From Paraphysomonas bandaiensis (taxonomy: Eukaryota > Protista > Chrysophyceae): a stretch of 64,000 nt of DNA. Each line of letters begins with the position of its first letter. The first letter of the stretch is position 1. The position numbers and the translations under genes were made by a program. Positions 46,700 through 52,935 of the stretch are shown one piece after another. The stretch covers positions 124,001 through 188,000 of the forward strand of contig CBFFRP010000200.1 of the NCBI GenBank assembly GCA_965644295.1, written 5' to 3'. The notes below the pieces were generated by a model. That model saw only the letters and a list, made by a program, of their open reading frames with translations. It did no database searches and had not been told where the DNA came from.

Positions 46700-48607
46700 T
46701 AAGTGCACTACTTATGAGCCCGAAAATTTCGAAGTACTTCGAGATTTTCATCATACATATGAACGTCACTATTTCCACACAAAGCAAACCTAATATATTT
46801 CCTAGAATCTTCGTCCAAAAATTCTGGACGATCTGGTCTGTTATGAATTGGAAGTTCCATCAACTTTTTTAACCTTTCCTCCTTCGTATCTGAACGTTGA
46901 ACAACTTCTTCTTTCTTTTTCTTTTCGTCACTTTTTTTTGTCTTGCCTTTCGATTTACCCTCTTTTGCTTTCGACTTTTTCTTCTTCTTGGTTTCTTCAG
47001 TTTTCTTTTTCTCGGCATTCGGTTCATTCTCCTTTTCAACCGCGTTACGTGATTGGTCTAATTTTGTATCAGGCAGCTTTTTTTCAGTGGGTTTTGCATC
47101 AGTGGTATCTGTAGTTTTAGCTTCTTCAGATTTACTCTATATGGGATGTTTCAAACGACGCAATTATCAAAGAGAAAGCTGACCTTTTTGGTAACAGGTT
47201 TCATTGAATGTAGCCATTTGTCTTCATCTGTAACTTTCTCTTCCCCCCCGGCCTTCTTTAGTCGACTTTTACCAGCGCCCATTGCATCTAGCAACTTTTC
47301 TTCCTCCTCTGGGTTTATCTATAACAGCATTACGGCATGAAATGAACTTCAAATAGTGCCCACCGTAGTTGCTTGTGAAACTGGAAGTGCAGTTCGTAGA
47401 GTTCCAATCCATTTCTCAGGATCTAAGAGAAGGAGAAAATTCCTTAAGTCTCCATTTTGCGACTGATGAGGAAGATGGTGATGTGCTAATATTCGTAAGT
47501 AGTTGCAATATTAACAAACCTGCATACTGTATGCTCTTTCTGCGTACTTGAGAGCCCTATCTCTATCACCAAGTATATAAGACAATTCCGCATTAGAATG
47601 CAGAAGCGACGGCTTATTTGGTGCCTTTAAACTAGCCTGTATATACCAAGAATTAAACACGGAAATAGACACAGCTTAGCACCGCACCTGATGGAATAGT
47701 TCGGCTGCCAAGGTTAATTCGCACCGATCCAGAGTTTGCAATGAGAGAACCTCCCATATTTCTACCGATTCACTAATGGGTTTCTGCTTCAACTGTCTAT
47801 CCACTTTGTTAAATGTCGCCTCAGGGTTCGGACCTTTGCTGATATCTTCTAGATATGCTTCCTTCAAATCCTCGTACGTCTGTGCAAGGACAACAGCATA
47901 CTTGCTCCCGCTTTGTTCGAAGGTCAGCGCTAAAAGGGAAAGAATGTGTGTACGCGTGAGTCCTTCGCTCTGTGGAGGATCATCCTTGACAAACTCTAAG
48001 TACTCTAACGCTTGTCCATTCTGGCCCAATCGTTTCAATATAGCTGTTTCATTGCTGACATTAGCGTAATATCACAAAAGAGCTGCAAATTCGAACCTGC
48101 AGCTTTAAATATAATATAAGCTAATTCTACCCCATCATCAGCTTCAGCAGTAATCATATCTGACAGTATTGTCAAACTCGCAGAAAGGCACCCCAAGCAC
48201 TCCTTAACGTATGCAAGTTTCAACATGACTCTATATTTCAGCTCTTGTGGGACACCCTCCACTTGTACTTCATCATATAAAACACCGAGTAAATTATCTG
48301 CTTCAGTCATATACGCTTTATGCTCAGGAGTCAGATTCAAACGAATAGAATCTTTCTTAGAAAACTTTTCACTCTTCCAGAATGTGACAAGAGCAGAAGC
48401 ATACTCGAATCTAGCCTCTCGTGACATTTCATGTGTACTCATGAACTCTCGAGCCGAGAGTATGCATTGTACCGCTCGCGGCTTCGCATTAGTTTTCACA
48501 CACAATTCAATTAACCTTCCATACTTGTCGAAAGTATCGGGGTTGCCAACCAAATCTACCTCTAGTGTTCCCAGTTCAGCAGCGACAGACTTGGAGATAT
48601 TCGCCAT
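46700..48607 (-). CDS. Multi-exon alpha-helical (TPR-like) protein with Lys/Glu-rich C-terminal region; 3' end uncertain
   Basis: ORFs 48035-48607 and 47676-48038 are linked by short introns; helical A/L/Y patterns; K-rich exon at ~46800-47135. Confidence 0.6.
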
Positions 48608-48848
48608 AACTCACTTGCAGTTATACAAATAATGAAACGACACAATCTGCAGAATATCAGAATAAATAAGCAGAATTAGGTTGGCTGCTACTGAGGCATC
48701 TGACTAGCGACGAGATGTATACCACTTACAAATAAACAAGAAACTAAATGAACTCAACTGCAGTACAGCCAGCTGTAACTGATACTGTAATACGACACAA
48801 TTGTACTGATACAGCTGTACCTCCTCAGAGTCTATCTACGTACACCAG

Positions 48849-48972
48849 TACATACATACATACATACATACATACATACATACATACATACATACATACA
48901 TACATACATACATACATACATACATACATACATACATACATACATACATACATACATACATACATACATACA
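48849..48972. repeat. (TACA)n microsatellite, ~31 units
   Basis: Perfect tetranucleotide run between two divergent genes. Confidence 0.97.
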
Positions 48973-49105
48973 TTCATTGCATGAGGTGCTATATGGTCAT
49001 AGTGTAGTGTATCAAGATAATATTAATGTCATTGTCGAGTGTATAGGTATCTGTTATTATAACTGGTGTCCGTTAGAAGTAGCGGACGTATCATTTATAT
49101 AGAAT

Positions 49106-52100
49106 ATGACAGAGAGGAGCTTCGACAAGCATGCTTCTCTGATAGATAATCCTGGTCGAGCTCACCTGCAGAGCGTATTGAAGACCAACCCTAATCCTGG
49201 TAAAGCGATATTGGAGCTACAGGACACTTTTGGTCTGAAGTATTCTAGCACTATCGCGCTCCCTCTGCTGGATTTGCTTGAGGTCTCTCGCGCGTCTGTC
49301 TATCAGACACTCTTCGACACATCCAAAACCAAACTAGAAGGTAACTGATAGGCTAGCTGGGCGATACTAGTTTACATTTTTATGCAGAGCTTTTACAGAA
49401 ACTTCCTCAACAAAAGCTGATTGCATTACTATCTGTAACGTTTCGATATATCACTGTGAGAGACCTCAAGTCTATTCCTGTTGCAATAATAAAAAGACTG
49501 AATGATGTTCCGGAGAAATTTCTCAAGGCGCTTGCCAATAAAAGGCTTCATCATGTGTTGGAGGTATGATACGCTGAAACAAATTTTTCTGCATGTACGC
49601 TAAGTTTTTACAGGAAATACCAATGCACGTGAGACGACAAGTATGGCATGTAGACCCGTCCTATTTCGAGACAGTTGTTTCGGATTTAAGTCAAACTTGG
49701 TTAGATGAGAATTCAAAGAATGGAAATACGAGGTAGTTTAAAGCCCTATGTGTTGTGGATTTGTTAACTGTATCTGATAGGCCGAGTCCTCCAACTGAAG
49801 AGTTCCGAGATTTCATTGGAGACTCTGTCTTCCTTTTTGGAAAGTTCGCTAAGATGTGTTGCAAGAATGTGATATTAGAGAAGAGTATGGCATGGTCAGT
49901 GCTGTTACGACGAACCATTGTAAGCATTAGGAAGGAAAAGGTTGTTAATTGTTTATATGACGTCGTGTGGATTAATTGCCATGGCTTGCAGCTCCCGGCC
50001 CTAGGGAAGTTACGGGACTTGTCGCTGCAAGTGGATCACTGCATTCGAGAAAGGACAATAGATGCTGCGGCAGTGGCTAGTATAATCGCATACCTCAGTG
50101 ATATTAAGCGTGCAGCAGATATATCGGGTGCGCGCATTGAGTTACGAACCGGTGGTTCTACCCCTTCTTCAGCTCCTTCGCTGTCCGAGAAACTCAAAAC
50201 CGCCTGGAAAACTCTCCACGACGCGAAATGCTTTTCAATATTCCGTCAACCGGTGAGTAATGGCCTCGTCCTTTTCATTTCTAAAAGGTTAAGCAGGCAA
50301 TTCAAGCGTGCCCGGATCAACGCACCAAAGATCGATATGCTGCCTTGGTACCACGGCCAATGGACCTTTCGGAGATGCAACGAAAACTTGACAGCTATTC
50401 ATCACTCGACGAATTCGATGCAGATATCGAGCTCATACTAGACAACTGCAGACGCTTTAATGGTCCTGGATACTATACAAATGTAATCTTCGTTTCTGTG
50501 GTTTCTGTGTCAGTACTGACTAATGGGATTCTAGATGGCAGACAAGTGCTCGGCTCTTTGGTCAAAGAAGAAAGCGATGATATTCAATACTACTGTTCCA
50601 GTTCCTCCACCAAAGAAAAGCCGTCAGCAATCTCCTAATATCAAACCCACTCCTTCTGCTGATCATACTTCTCTGTCGGTTCGAAGCAGGGGTGATATGG
50701 AAAATAGTAGCACACACCAAGAACTGGACGAGTTACAGATTACTAAACGCCCCCGCATAGTTAGAGAAGAGAAAAAAGATCAGCCTCAGCTCAACCTGCA
50801 GACCGTACTCACATCTGCCTGGGATTATATATCTTCTCTTGATAAAGACGGAATCTTCGCCCAACCGGTAACAAATGTGATAAGCACGTAGGGTATAGAT
50901 GACCGGGCATTGTGTAGGTGGCTGAATTGCTCCCAACTGCAGATGCGAAGAGGTACCTCAGTGTAATAAAAAAGCCAATGGACTTATCAACAATGAAGTC
51001 GAAATTAGAACGCTATAAGACTGTTGACGAATTCGAGGCCGATCTTGAGCTTATGGTGGAGAACTGTAAAACCTTTTATGGCGAAGCTGATGAGTACTAC
51101 CAGGTTCTCATACATTTGACTTGATTCGACGTTATGTAACCCATACATGTAGTTGGGGCGACGTTTCATTAGCTCATGGAAGGAGAAAAAGGAGTCCTTG
51201 CTGCATGGAGCTAATATGAGCAACAAAAGCCAGTCTGCGCCATCTGTTCGTGCTGCTCCTTCTCGTGAACGACCCGTGCTTACACCTATAACGGACACAC
51301 AGCAGCGGGAGGTGGCAGTTGCTCTTGACAACAAGGAGGCCGCGCTAGAGCGAGCGTGGGACTACATTTCGTCATTGGACCACGATGGCATATTTGCGAA
51401 GCCTGTATGTGTGCATGCTATCATATTATATTTAGTTTAATGTTCTGCAGGTTACTGATATGGATGCCCCAGGCTACTCTGCGACTGTGAGAAAACCTAT
51501 GGATATGAGTACTATCCAATCGAAATTGTTCAAGTATAGGTCTATTCCTAACTTTGAAGCGGATCTCAGGTTGATGCTGGAGAACTGTTTGGAGTACAAT
51601 GATCCTCGTGGGGATTACGAGCTCTCCGACGTAAGAATAGGATATATGTTGTTTTAATATCTGACCTTGCCCTATAGTTCGCGGTTCAAATTTGGGAGGA
51701 CTGGTTAGTGAACAGAGCAGACGTATTACTAGGCCGTGAGGTGAAAGCAGTATTAAAAGTTAATCGACCCAAGAAATCTCGTAACAGCAATGGTGGTGGT
51801 AATGAGCGAGTGAAGCCAACAAAGCGACAGACCGTTATTAAAGATGATGATTGGTCGGATGGTGACGACGACGATGATAACTTCGATGAGGACGAAACTG
51901 ATGACTACACGTCCAAGAAACCACGGAGTGGAGGAAACTCCAAAAACACCCGGAAGAATAAAACAGGTGTGTCACGCAGTGTAAAGCAGAAGTCAGCTGT
52001 TGTCGCCCCTATTATCCCAGCTGTGCCTCTACATGTACAGGCCAACTTGAAATCACGCGCATCAGTTACTACTGATGCGTCCACAGTCTCTTCACATCAA

Positions 52101-52577
52101 CCGAGCGCAGCTCCTAAAATTTCTAATAGCAGTAAACAGCCAGTGGTAAACCCCCATTCAAGTAATAGTGGCTCCAGAAATCATCCTTCTCACTCCACCG
52201 GGGTGTCAGGGAAAGATGTGTTGCTATGGGCCACAGTTATTTTGAGGGATTTTCAGCTTCGAGAGCTCTTGATCGAGTACTTGGCTTCAGTGATGCAAGG
52301 CCTAGTCGATAAAAACATCCTTCCTATGGACGATGACAATGCAAGGAATTCTATTTATTTAATACAGTTTAATATGCACTTTGAGCCCAGTTACCCCGTG
52401 TTGAATCAACACTTACTTCGCACATTGTTACCAAAGTTAATGCTAGAAAGTGTCTTGCACGATGGTGACAGAGAAGGTGTTCACAGTATTGTTGACACAA
52501 TATTGCAAGCTGTACCCTATGACAAAGATATTGTGACGGATATCATTACTAAGATGTACTCTGAGTTAGTCAAATAA
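49106..52577 (+). CDS. NELFB: NELF-B (COBRA1)-like protein with three inserted bromodomains (multi-exon; 3' end may extend further)
   Basis: Spliced N-terminal half has KAILELQDTFGL...ALPLLDLLEVSRASVYQTLFD, VPEKFLK, VRRQVW, DHCIRERTID. Three PMDL/M...F.AD..L...NC..(F/Y)(N/Y) bromodomains follow. The C-terminal part has VILRD...LVDKNILPMD...LLRTLLPKLM. Confidence 0.8.
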
Positions 52578-52653
52578 AAAATTTCTTTGTGCTTGTTAAT
52601 ATCATAACCTTTTCTTCTTATTATTCATATGAAGTGGCATTTTCACGAGTTTG

Positions 52654-52935
52654 TCTCCAGCCTGATTGGTAGAACGTTGCAATTAGCGGGAAACATATTC
52701 GAAATTGTAGTCTGTAAAATAGGCAGATGGTTGAAATAGTGTGCACGTCTCTAAAATTTAAAACTTTCTCTAGTTTAAGCGAGAATGCTGGTTTGTAAAT
52801 GCCGAAGCAATCATTGAGTCCAAATCTCCAGCCTGTGTAGTAGAACGTTGTAATTAGCGGGAAACATATTCGAAATGTAGTCTGTAAAATAGACAGATGG
52901 TTAAAATAGTGTGCACATCTTTAAAATTTAAACTT
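52654..52935 (+). repeat. Imperfect direct repeat, ~110 bp x2 (52654-52766, 52825-52935)
   Basis: TCTCCAGCCTG...GCGGGAAACATATTCGAAAT...AAAATTTAAACTT occurs twice. Confidence 0.85.

Follow-up and report, generated by a model that had tools for sequence, protein, structure and literature searches.

The NELF-B proteins closest to the one described here are those of other stramenopiles. According to the supplement of Chivu et al. (bioRxiv 10.1101/2023.02.19.529146), all stramenopile NELF-B candidates bear a bromodomain, and stramenopile NELF-C/D bears WW domains. In the pfam_scan data of the same preprint, Hondaea, Mucochytrium and Phytophthora have the order COBRA1, bromodomain, COBRA1, with COBRA1 matched to hmm 164-177, then the bromodomain, then COBRA1 again from hmm 172-190. 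The bromodomain is called 'C-terminal' by these authors and is not discussed in their main text. The preprint describes NELF-A and NELF-E as having evolved after the NELF-B/C-D core, which is considered an ancient eukaryotic unit, and reports that strong focal pausing, like NELF-A/E, was added later. The NELF-B files of that study include no Paraphysomonas or Chrysophyceae name.

Animal NELF-B (human; PDB 6GML and 8UHG) has no bromodomains. Its N-terminal module contacts NELF-A/C, and NELF-E is held jointly by that region and the C-terminal module (residues 438-519); the module boundaries are those given in eLife 2016.

The stretch of DNA analysed here (the window) comprises 64,000 nucleotides of Paraphysomonas bandaiensis (assembly GCA_965644295.1, contig CBFFRP010000200.1, positions 124,001 to 188,000). 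It includes a NELF-B-like gene with the following features.

49106-52577, + strand: complete coding sequence of the NELF-B-like gene, 11 exons, 995 aa (stop-free spliced translation and transcript joints)
49009-52635, + strand: transcribed span, from the outermost positions of two spliced 3100-nt contigs (X1 and X2) combined
49106-49340, 49388-49563, 49614-49732, 49781-49940, 49992-50252 and 50297-50482, + strand: exons 1-6
50535-50867, 50918-51103, 51153-51404, 51451-51630 and 51678-52577, + strand: exons 7-11
49941-49991, + strand: intron 4, 51 nt, in frame and without a stop; GT..AG joint 49938/49990 found in contigs of all four runs
49106-50120, + strand: NELF-B N-terminal module, aa 1-273, homologous to human NELF-B ~14-294
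50175-50585, + strand: bromodomain 1 (BD1), aa 292-396, split by introns 50253-50296 and 50483-50534
50787-51203, + strand: bromodomain 2 (BD2), aa 464-569, split by introns 50868-50917 and 51104-51152
51336-51734, + strand: bromodomain 3 (BD3), aa 614-715, split by introns 51405-51450 and 51631-51677
51735-52211, + strand: low-complexity linker, aa 716-874, ~160 residues (composition and linker alignment)
52212-52574, + strand: remnant of the NELF-B middle module, aa 875-995 (C-terminal HMM and joined profile)

The start ATG at 49106 is preceded by an in-frame TAG 3 bases upstream, and the stop TAA occupies 52575-52577. All 10 introns are of the GT..AG type and 44-52 nt long. The transcript contigs X1 (49052-52635) and X2 (49009-52592) each hold the entire coding sequence with every intron spliced out and define a 5' UTR of at least 97 nt and a 3' UTR of at least 58 nt. 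A third data set and a polyA marine metatranscriptome yielded shorter contigs with identical splice joints. The gene is thus real and expressed as a single spliced mRNA. The original prediction had proposed one spliced gene, and the open frame indeed runs through all 10 confirmed joints to a single terminal stop. The order of parts and the extent that it gave stand; its gene model had overlooked intron 4, which is read through in a straight ORF reading because it is in frame and lacks a stop, and which was exposed by the transcript contigs.

The three bromodomains were identified by significant matches of one exon piece each to the Pfam Bromodomain model PF00439: 50297-50482 for BD1 (E 8.6e-14, 51.7 bits), 50918-51103 for BD2 (E 1.9e-16, 60.2 bits) and 51451-51630 for BD3 (E 1.1e-12, 48.2 bits), all above the gathering score of 21.7 bits. 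Their boundaries lie near those predicted. The register of the acetyl-lysine pocket was taken from BRD4, where we take Y97 to be the ZA-loop Tyr and N140 the BC-loop Asn. Judged by motif register only, BD1 (NCRRFN) and BD3 (NCLEYN) carry the pocket Tyr and Asn, and in BD2 of the Paraphysomonas genome the Tyr is kept and the Asn is replaced by Tyr (NCKTFY); comparison with the orthologue L009 showed that its BD2 retains the Asn. The linker after BD3 matches the acidic/basic linker of the original prediction and holds an acidic patch with Trp (DDDW), a K/R patch and a PLHVQ motif, short motifs that recur in orthologues.

Tandem bromodomains are shared with BET proteins (BRD4 and relatives), which act at the promoter-proximal elongation step and promote pause release through P-TEFb. 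BET proteins act in trans via P-TEFb, whereas the reader domains of the Paraphysomonas protein are part of the NELF-B-like subunit itself, which has no ET or CTD domain. Several bromodomains per chain are also found in Polybromo/PBRM1 and TAF1, where they allow multivalent reading of acetylated nucleosomes; in those proteins, however, the host scaffold and complex are different and no helical-repeat subunit is interrupted by the bromodomains.

For the region upstream of the bromodomains, profiles were built from a few environmental orthologues and searched against the PDB (177,635 sequences). The exon 1-2 profile (A6) matched NELF-B at E 4.4e-8 over human residues 14-137, the next family following at 2e-3. 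NELF-B 202-294 was the top match of the exon 4-5 profile (A1), and NELF-B 25-73 gave the sole matches of an exon-1 profile. Profiles A1 and A2 each ranked NELF-B first, in colinear order. No NELF-B match was obtained with the very short exon-2-only and exon-3-only profiles, or by single-piece phmmer searches of the PDB with exon 4-5, the last exon or the C-terminal piece. Thus, the N-terminal helical flank is NELF-B, as had been proposed, and the human NELF-B motifs cited in that proposal are genuine, the PDB alignments printing the same human residues. Within the protein, conservation is highest in the module by which human NELF-B contacts NELF-A/C.

A split COBRA1 match flanking the bromodomains, which the original prediction had expected, was not found on any piece. 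The Pfam COBRA1 model (PF06209) matched neither the exon pieces and orthologue fragments at E<=1 to 10, where exon fragmentation lowers the power of the search, nor the contiguous 146-aa N-terminus of L007; a six-frame genome scan with PF06209 gave no match, its controls being silent as well. A search of 1.84 billion representatives, with a query that still contained the in-frame intron 4, returned ORF-level fragments and two spurious sequences (P0003 and P0006), and two metagenome locus scans found no relative.

The architecture with three bromodomains is present in full and mostly position for position in the environmental orthologues L009, L010, L011/L012 and L013; L015 spans the three bromodomains and the C-terminal part, and L003, L004 and L007 are partial. 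The triplication is thus conserved one-to-one in at least five relatives, and environmental contigs recovered independently from several samples carry the parts in an identical order. A search of the own genome with A6 revealed no NELF-B-like locus besides 49106-52577, so that this is the one NELF-B (COBRA1-family) gene detected in this marine stramenopile. The suggested search for a partner gave an ORF (G000:C406) encoding two WW domains (E 7e-17) and a TH1 domain (PF04858, E ~3e-14 to 4e-13), i.e. NELF-C/D.

The C-terminal module of human NELF-B (438-519) is absent. The window protein ends ~33 residues past the position aligned with human residue 383, and this short tail leaves no space for the module. 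It is likewise absent from the orthologues with a complete 3' end (L009, L010, L011/L012 and L013); the window protein and these orthologues end ~33 (window) to ~90 residues after the LLPxxML motif (human ~379).

The best explanation overall, which we consider likely, is that the gene encodes NELF-B with an inserted three-bromodomain cassette and the role outlined below. Its identity and architecture, i.e. NELF-B with three inserted bromodomains, are very probably as described. Among the alternatives, the one that survives best is that the protein descends from NELF-B but works outside any NELF complex, as a multivalent bromodomain chromatin scaffold that reuses the NELF-B helical repeats. Such a scaffold would fit the missing C-terminal module, the lack of a COBRA1 Pfam signal, the strong divergence from animals and the dominant share of the protein that its three reader domains and its long disordered linker take up. 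However, NELF-C/D is retained in this genome, where no second NELF-B-like gene was detected, and the part conserved best is that which in human contacts NELF-A/C. Moreover, the bromodomain-bearing form occurs in every stramenopile NELF-B candidate examined, and WW-bearing NELF-C/D is recorded for stramenopiles too. Loss of the NELF context is thus improbable.

A second alternative takes the wording of the published supplement literally: the bromodomains would be a C-terminal fusion, and the last 120 residues an unrelated helical tail. This region is conserved in L009, L010, L011, L013 and L015. A four-sequence C-terminal profile alone gave no NELF-B match among PDB sequences at E<=10, and word-indexed homologue searches with the C-terminus gave no matches, as an unrelated tail would predict. 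Since the C-terminal part alone misses NELF-B in the PDB, its assignment as a continuation leans on a targeted test (p ~3e-4 to 3e-3). A C-terminal HMM scored 7.5 bits against human residues 295-420, a value reached by 13 of 5000 shuffles, and aa 875-962 (52212-52475) align with human NELF-B 297-383, directly past the end of the N-terminal part. When the bromodomain block was excised in five orthologues, the joined profile gave one 21.4-bit domain over human 224-381; the full-sequence score was 21.8 bits, compared with 10.3 bits for the N-terminal part alone, so that the tail adds 11.5 bits, and does so only if colinear after that part. A score of 21.8 bits was reached by one of 3000 shuffles of the C-terminal part, and a reversed tail or another NELF-B segment in its place gave no gain. 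The human NELF-B segment used in the alignment tests is identical to 8uhg_V at 64 of 64 positions. A concatenated profile of the whole family matched human NELF-B with 58.3 bits (E 5e-15). The homology of the middle region is weaker than that of the N-terminal part.

The cassette is preceded by ...VDHCIRERTID...KRAAD and followed by KDVLLWATVILRD, where NELF-B resumes. This compares with Hondaea, Mucochytrium and Phytophthora, where the bromodomain comes after an 'LDxxIR/VK' helix, NELF-B resumes at 'xxL(G/S)DxxxIL', and COBRA1 continues after the bromodomain from hmm 172-190 onward. A C-terminal fusion is accordingly quite unlikely. In the preferred reading, the bromodomains lie inside NELF-B, both flanks being NELF-B in an uninterrupted alignment once the block is excised, and the second region takes up the next human segment, as had been predicted, in one domain running through the junction. 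From these alignments, the insertion site is placed at about human residues 294-297, the boundary of the N-terminal and middle modules.

Chance resemblance among α-helical repeat proteins could be suspected because fragment searches pointed to generic folds. AlphaFold models of two fragments (pLDDT 69 and 52), compared with the PDB by Foldseek, recovered generic helical bundles and solenoids only; look-alikes in a language-model protein atlas were other HEAT-like families below 0.9 or nothing usable, with COBRA1 not named. However, the match at E 4.4e-8 was obtained against the entire PDB, where the next family reached 2e-3, three separate profiles matched the same protein in colinear order, and none of 3000 whole-sequence shuffles reached the joined score, which makes coincidence very improbable. 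A gene-model or assembly artefact joining neighbouring NELF-B-like and bromodomain genes, for which there is just the general caveat that a contig over two genes does not prove one transcript, can be dismissed for practical purposes given the single open frame across ten confirmed joints with one terminal stop and the same part order on independent environmental contigs from several samples.

Compared with human NELF-B, the Paraphysomonas protein thus has colinear homology over ~14-294 and 297-383, a shared helical-repeat scaffold and a NELF-C/D partner gene; in contrast to it, the protein has bromodomains and lacks module 438-519. Its bromodomains occupy approximately the same site (COBRA1 hmm ~165-190) as the single one of Hondaea, Aurantiochytrium, Thraustochytrium, Mucochytrium, Vaucheria, Phytophthora, Aphanomyces and Saprolegnia and are 36-48% identical to bromodomains of the one-bromodomain form. 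The partner NELF-C/D has N-terminal WW domains in those stramenopiles, as in Paraphysomonas. The differences are that Paraphysomonas has three bromodomains in tandem and a ~160-residue charged linker, and that its clade is undetected by Pfam COBRA1. Tandem triplication, introns included, of the single stramenopile NELF-B bromodomain is the most likely origin of the cassette.

The architecture had been thought undescribed. This does not hold for the one-bromodomain form, which is on record in the supplement of the Chivu et al. 2023-24 preprint; hence, what is new is the tandem triplication kept in relatives, the mapped insertion point and a clade invisible to COBRA1.

As regards function, the scaffold retains the N-terminal module together with the initial part of the middle 'hinge' module, with the cassette of three bromodomains and the charged linker inserted at the module boundary and the module that cradles NELF-E in animals missing. 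The protein would pair with the WW-bearing NELF-C/D (TH1) of the same genome to give a two-subunit NELF core. The bromodomains (a canonical acetyl-lysine pocket is predicted for at least two) may tether this core to acetylated promoter-proximal nucleosomes or to other acetylated proteins and so take over the anchoring given by NELF-A and NELF-E in animals. An acetyl-histone reader would then be hard-wired into the pausing complex, as the original prediction suggested. We put forward such acetyl-lysine tethering of the NELF core tentatively. A more specific proposal for the chrysophyte clade, which is more doubtful still, is that the ancestral two-subunit core may be a self-contained, chromatin- and CTD-guided checkpoint, in which the triplicated multivalent acetyl-lysine reader in NELF-B, together with the WW domains of NELF-C/D, would stand in for NELF-A/E in anchoring to Pol II and RNA.

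Because the architecture was already on record, the surprise is limited. The Pfam COBRA1 model misses the Paraphysomonas clade, and surveys of NELF distribution therefore undercount it. An acetyl-lysine reader resides inside NELF-B across a whole eukaryotic supergroup and is tripled and conserved here. Bromodomain-bearing NELF-B provides a concrete, testable handle on the role of the bare NELF core in protists. If the proposed checkpoint exists, histone acetylation would itself bring in the pausing factor or set its position. Animals do the opposite: there, acetylation attracts the release factor via BET proteins.

The gene is encoded on the forward strand as one spliced unit, running from a start ATG at 49106, with an in-frame TAG three bases 5' of it, to a TAA at 52575–52577. 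In the final model it comprises 11 exons and encodes a product of 995 aa. Alignment of public contigs to 49000–52700 defined ten GT..AG joints; the first model contained nine introns, placed by eye and by frame, and the tenth was added from transcript contigs. The whole CDS lacking all ten introns was present in two contigs of 3100 nt from transcript data sets X1 and X2, which carry one organism label, and the same joints were found piecewise in a third data set (X4) and in a polyA marine metatranscriptome (X5). Thus, the bromodomain and NELF-B-like parts, originally predicted to form a single spliced gene, belong to one expressed mRNA and not to two genes. The intron at 49941–49991, within the N-terminal module, is 51 nt long, in frame and stop-free, hence a straight reading runs through it. 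Its retention would add 17 residues to the module; it was spliced out in all four runs.

The ORFs adjoining the gene gave no Pfam match. The roughly 500-bp divergent intergenic region on the 5' side includes a long (ACAT)n microsatellite (48848–48973). Just past the 3' end lies a direct repeat of roughly 110 bp, the two copies of which (52654–52762 and 52825–52932) are 92% identical and about 170 bp apart. The upstream neighbour and the three bromodomains are as follows.

48035–48607, minus strand, upstream neighbour ORF, oriented divergently to the NELF-B gene
aa 292–396, plus strand, BD1, Pfam Bromodomain E 8.6e-14
aa 464–569, plus strand, BD2, Pfam Bromodomain E 1.9e-16
aa 614–715, plus strand, BD3, Pfam Bromodomain E 1.1e-12

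The Pfam matches fall on the central exons of the three repeats and bear out the claimed tandem bromodomains, each at E 1.1e-12 or better. Pairwise identity between BD1, BD2 and BD3 is 30–47%. Two intron positions are common to all three, and introns 4–10 are all phase 0 (50253–51677 for the cassette), which suggests that the cassette arose by tandem triplication of an exon–intron unit. In BRD4 the reference acetyl-lysine-pocket residues are Y97 (ZA-loop Tyr) and N140 (BC-loop Asn). In motif register with BRD4, the ZA-loop Tyr is present in BD1, BD2 and BD3, and the BC-loop Asn is kept in BD1 and BD3, with Tyr instead in BD2; this replacement of the acetyl-lysine-anchoring residue lies at 51060–51080 (NCKTFY). 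In the environmental relative L009, BD2 retains the Asn (about 10070) and BD3 has His at that position; the BD2 alignments of the remaining orthologues end short of the residue.

A split COBRA1 match had been expected. However, Pfam COBRA1 matched none of the exon pieces, and a six-frame genome scan was likewise without a match, the controls being silent as well. NELF-B was also absent among the matches of PDB searches with single pieces of the protein. An exon 4–5 query against 1.84 billion representative proteins gave four true relatives only, all metagenome ORF-level fragments, three of which (P0001, P0004 and P0005) run on into the start of a bromodomain. Small profiles were then built from orthologues in several environmental samples (contigs of the fragments and later matches). 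The profile of exons 1–2 matched NELF-B chains in the PDB at E 4.4e-8 (36 bits, human 14–137; next family 2e-3), the exon-1 profile alone matched NELF-B as its sole family, and the profile of exons 4–5 ranked NELF-B 202–294 top among 177,635 sequences. The first helical region is therefore NELF-B, as proposed.

Relatives of the C-terminal piece were not detected in the first searches, and its profile alone did not match NELF-B in the PDB. The piece is conserved in the long orthologue contigs as W-A-x-[VI]-IL[RH]D ... LP-x-DD ... LLR-x-ILP-x-x-ML. Human test segments 14–137, 202–294 and 359–420 were taken from PDB output, and 295–358 was verified as 64/64 identical to 8uhg_V. On human 295–420 the C-terminal HMM scored 7.5 bits, colinear, a value reached by 13/5000 shuffles and 0/106 natural decoys. 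A joined profile, in which the exon 4–5 region of five orthologues was fused to the C-terminal core with the bromodomain block excised, aligned to human 224–381 as a single uninterrupted domain (21.4 bits) with a three-residue gap at the junction. Its full-sequence score was 21.8 bits versus 10.3 bits for the N-part alone and 9.4 ± 1.6 bits for the N-part with a shuffled C-part; 21.8 was reached in 1/3000 shuffles, and a reversed C-part or a different NELF-B segment brought no gain. The whole-family profile reached 58.3 bits, corresponding to E 5e-15 for a search space the size of the PDB, and its alignment comprised two colinear domains. Therefore the flanks are two halves of NELF-B, and the second helical region continues it, as had been claimed. 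We regard the assignment as NELF-B with inserted bromodomains as very probable.

By alignment, the cassette is placed at about human residues 294–297. Crosslinking of human NELF defined N-terminal (85–291), middle 'hinge' (291–438) and C-terminal (438–519) modules of NELF-B (eLife 2016), of which the first contacts NELF-A/C and the last, jointly with the N-terminal region, holds NELF-E; hence the insertion falls on the N-terminal/middle boundary. The protein ends about 33 residues past the position aligned to human 383, and in orthologues whose 3' end is complete the protein extends about 60–90 residues beyond the LLPxxML motif. Thus, the NELF-E-cradling module is absent, in agreement with the description of NELF-B/C-D as an old core that NELF-A and NELF-E joined later (Chivu et al., bioRxiv 2023.02.19.529146).

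The fusion sought in relatives was found with full architecture in L009, L010, L011/L012 and L013; L015 has three bromodomains and the C-terminal part, and L003, L004 and L007 are partial. In five or more relatives, each of the three bromodomains for the most part has its counterpart at the corresponding position. P0014 (JGI sample 3300072015) is a divergent relative, 48% identical at the N-terminus, followed on the same contig by an uninterrupted 1027-aa ORF that probably encodes the remainder of the gene with few introns. At the greatest distance among the relatives found (28% identity), L016:290–1900 has the NELF-B N-part and then a bromodomain-like stretch without the pocket Asn. Short motifs are conserved across orthologues in the disordered linker (51735–52211; L009:10536–10991; L010:8333–8812; L013:7041–7600): a K/R patch, an acidic stretch bearing a single Trp (DDDW, EDW or DFDW), and (F)VKPLPLH(I/V)Q, which reads AVPLHVQ in the gene studied here. 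They may serve in docking or in nuclear localisation.

The NELF-B family profile found this locus alone in the 62.6-Mb assembly. The search for NELF-C/D located TH1 on a separate contig, in one ORF with two N-terminal WW domains.

L001:928–2131 (G000:C406, about 229147–230350), WW-TH1 gene, Pfam WW E 7e-17, TH1 E 3e-14

The N-terminal module, which is kept, is predicted to bind the WW-TH1 protein. The bromodomain array would leave the scaffold at the hinge on a flexible linker, from which it could anchor the core to acetylated factors or to nucleosomes (+1 or promoter) that carry acetyl marks, and the WW domains of the partner could recognise phospho-CTD or proline-rich motifs. Pausing might in this way be positioned, strengthened or relieved. 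This combined functional reading is tentative.

Literature text searches found no paper that discusses NELF-B with bromodomains. However, the architecture, believed undescribed in the original prediction, is on record in Chivu et al. (bioRxiv 2023.02.19.529146), where the word 'bromodomain' is absent from the main text and present in the supplement. According to the supplement, every stramenopile NELF-B candidate has a bromodomain. The summary table lists 'C-terminal Bromodomain' and 'N-terminal WW domains' for Stramenopiles, including a WW and NELF-C/D fusion like that found here. The pfam_scan layout is COBRA1 (hmm 3–165)/Bromodomain/COBRA1 (hmm 172–286) in Hondaea and the same in Mucochytrium; Phytophthora infestans has a bromodomain and then COBRA1 hmm 190–294, and Vaucheria, Thraustochytrium, Aphanomyces and Saprolegnia have one bromodomain after COBRA1 hmm 164–177. 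Thus, many of the stramenopiles examined share the split architecture, with the break at approximately one site, and it is already recorded, though labelled 'C-terminal' and not discussed. The NELF-B files of that study contain no Paraphysomonas or Chrysophyceae names, consistent with the blindness of COBRA1 to this clade. Whereas those candidates carry one bromodomain, the gene studied here carries three, kept in at least five relatives. Also new are a divergent NELF-B clade missed by standard models, an insertion point placed explicitly on a module boundary, the loss of the C-terminal module, and transcript proof.
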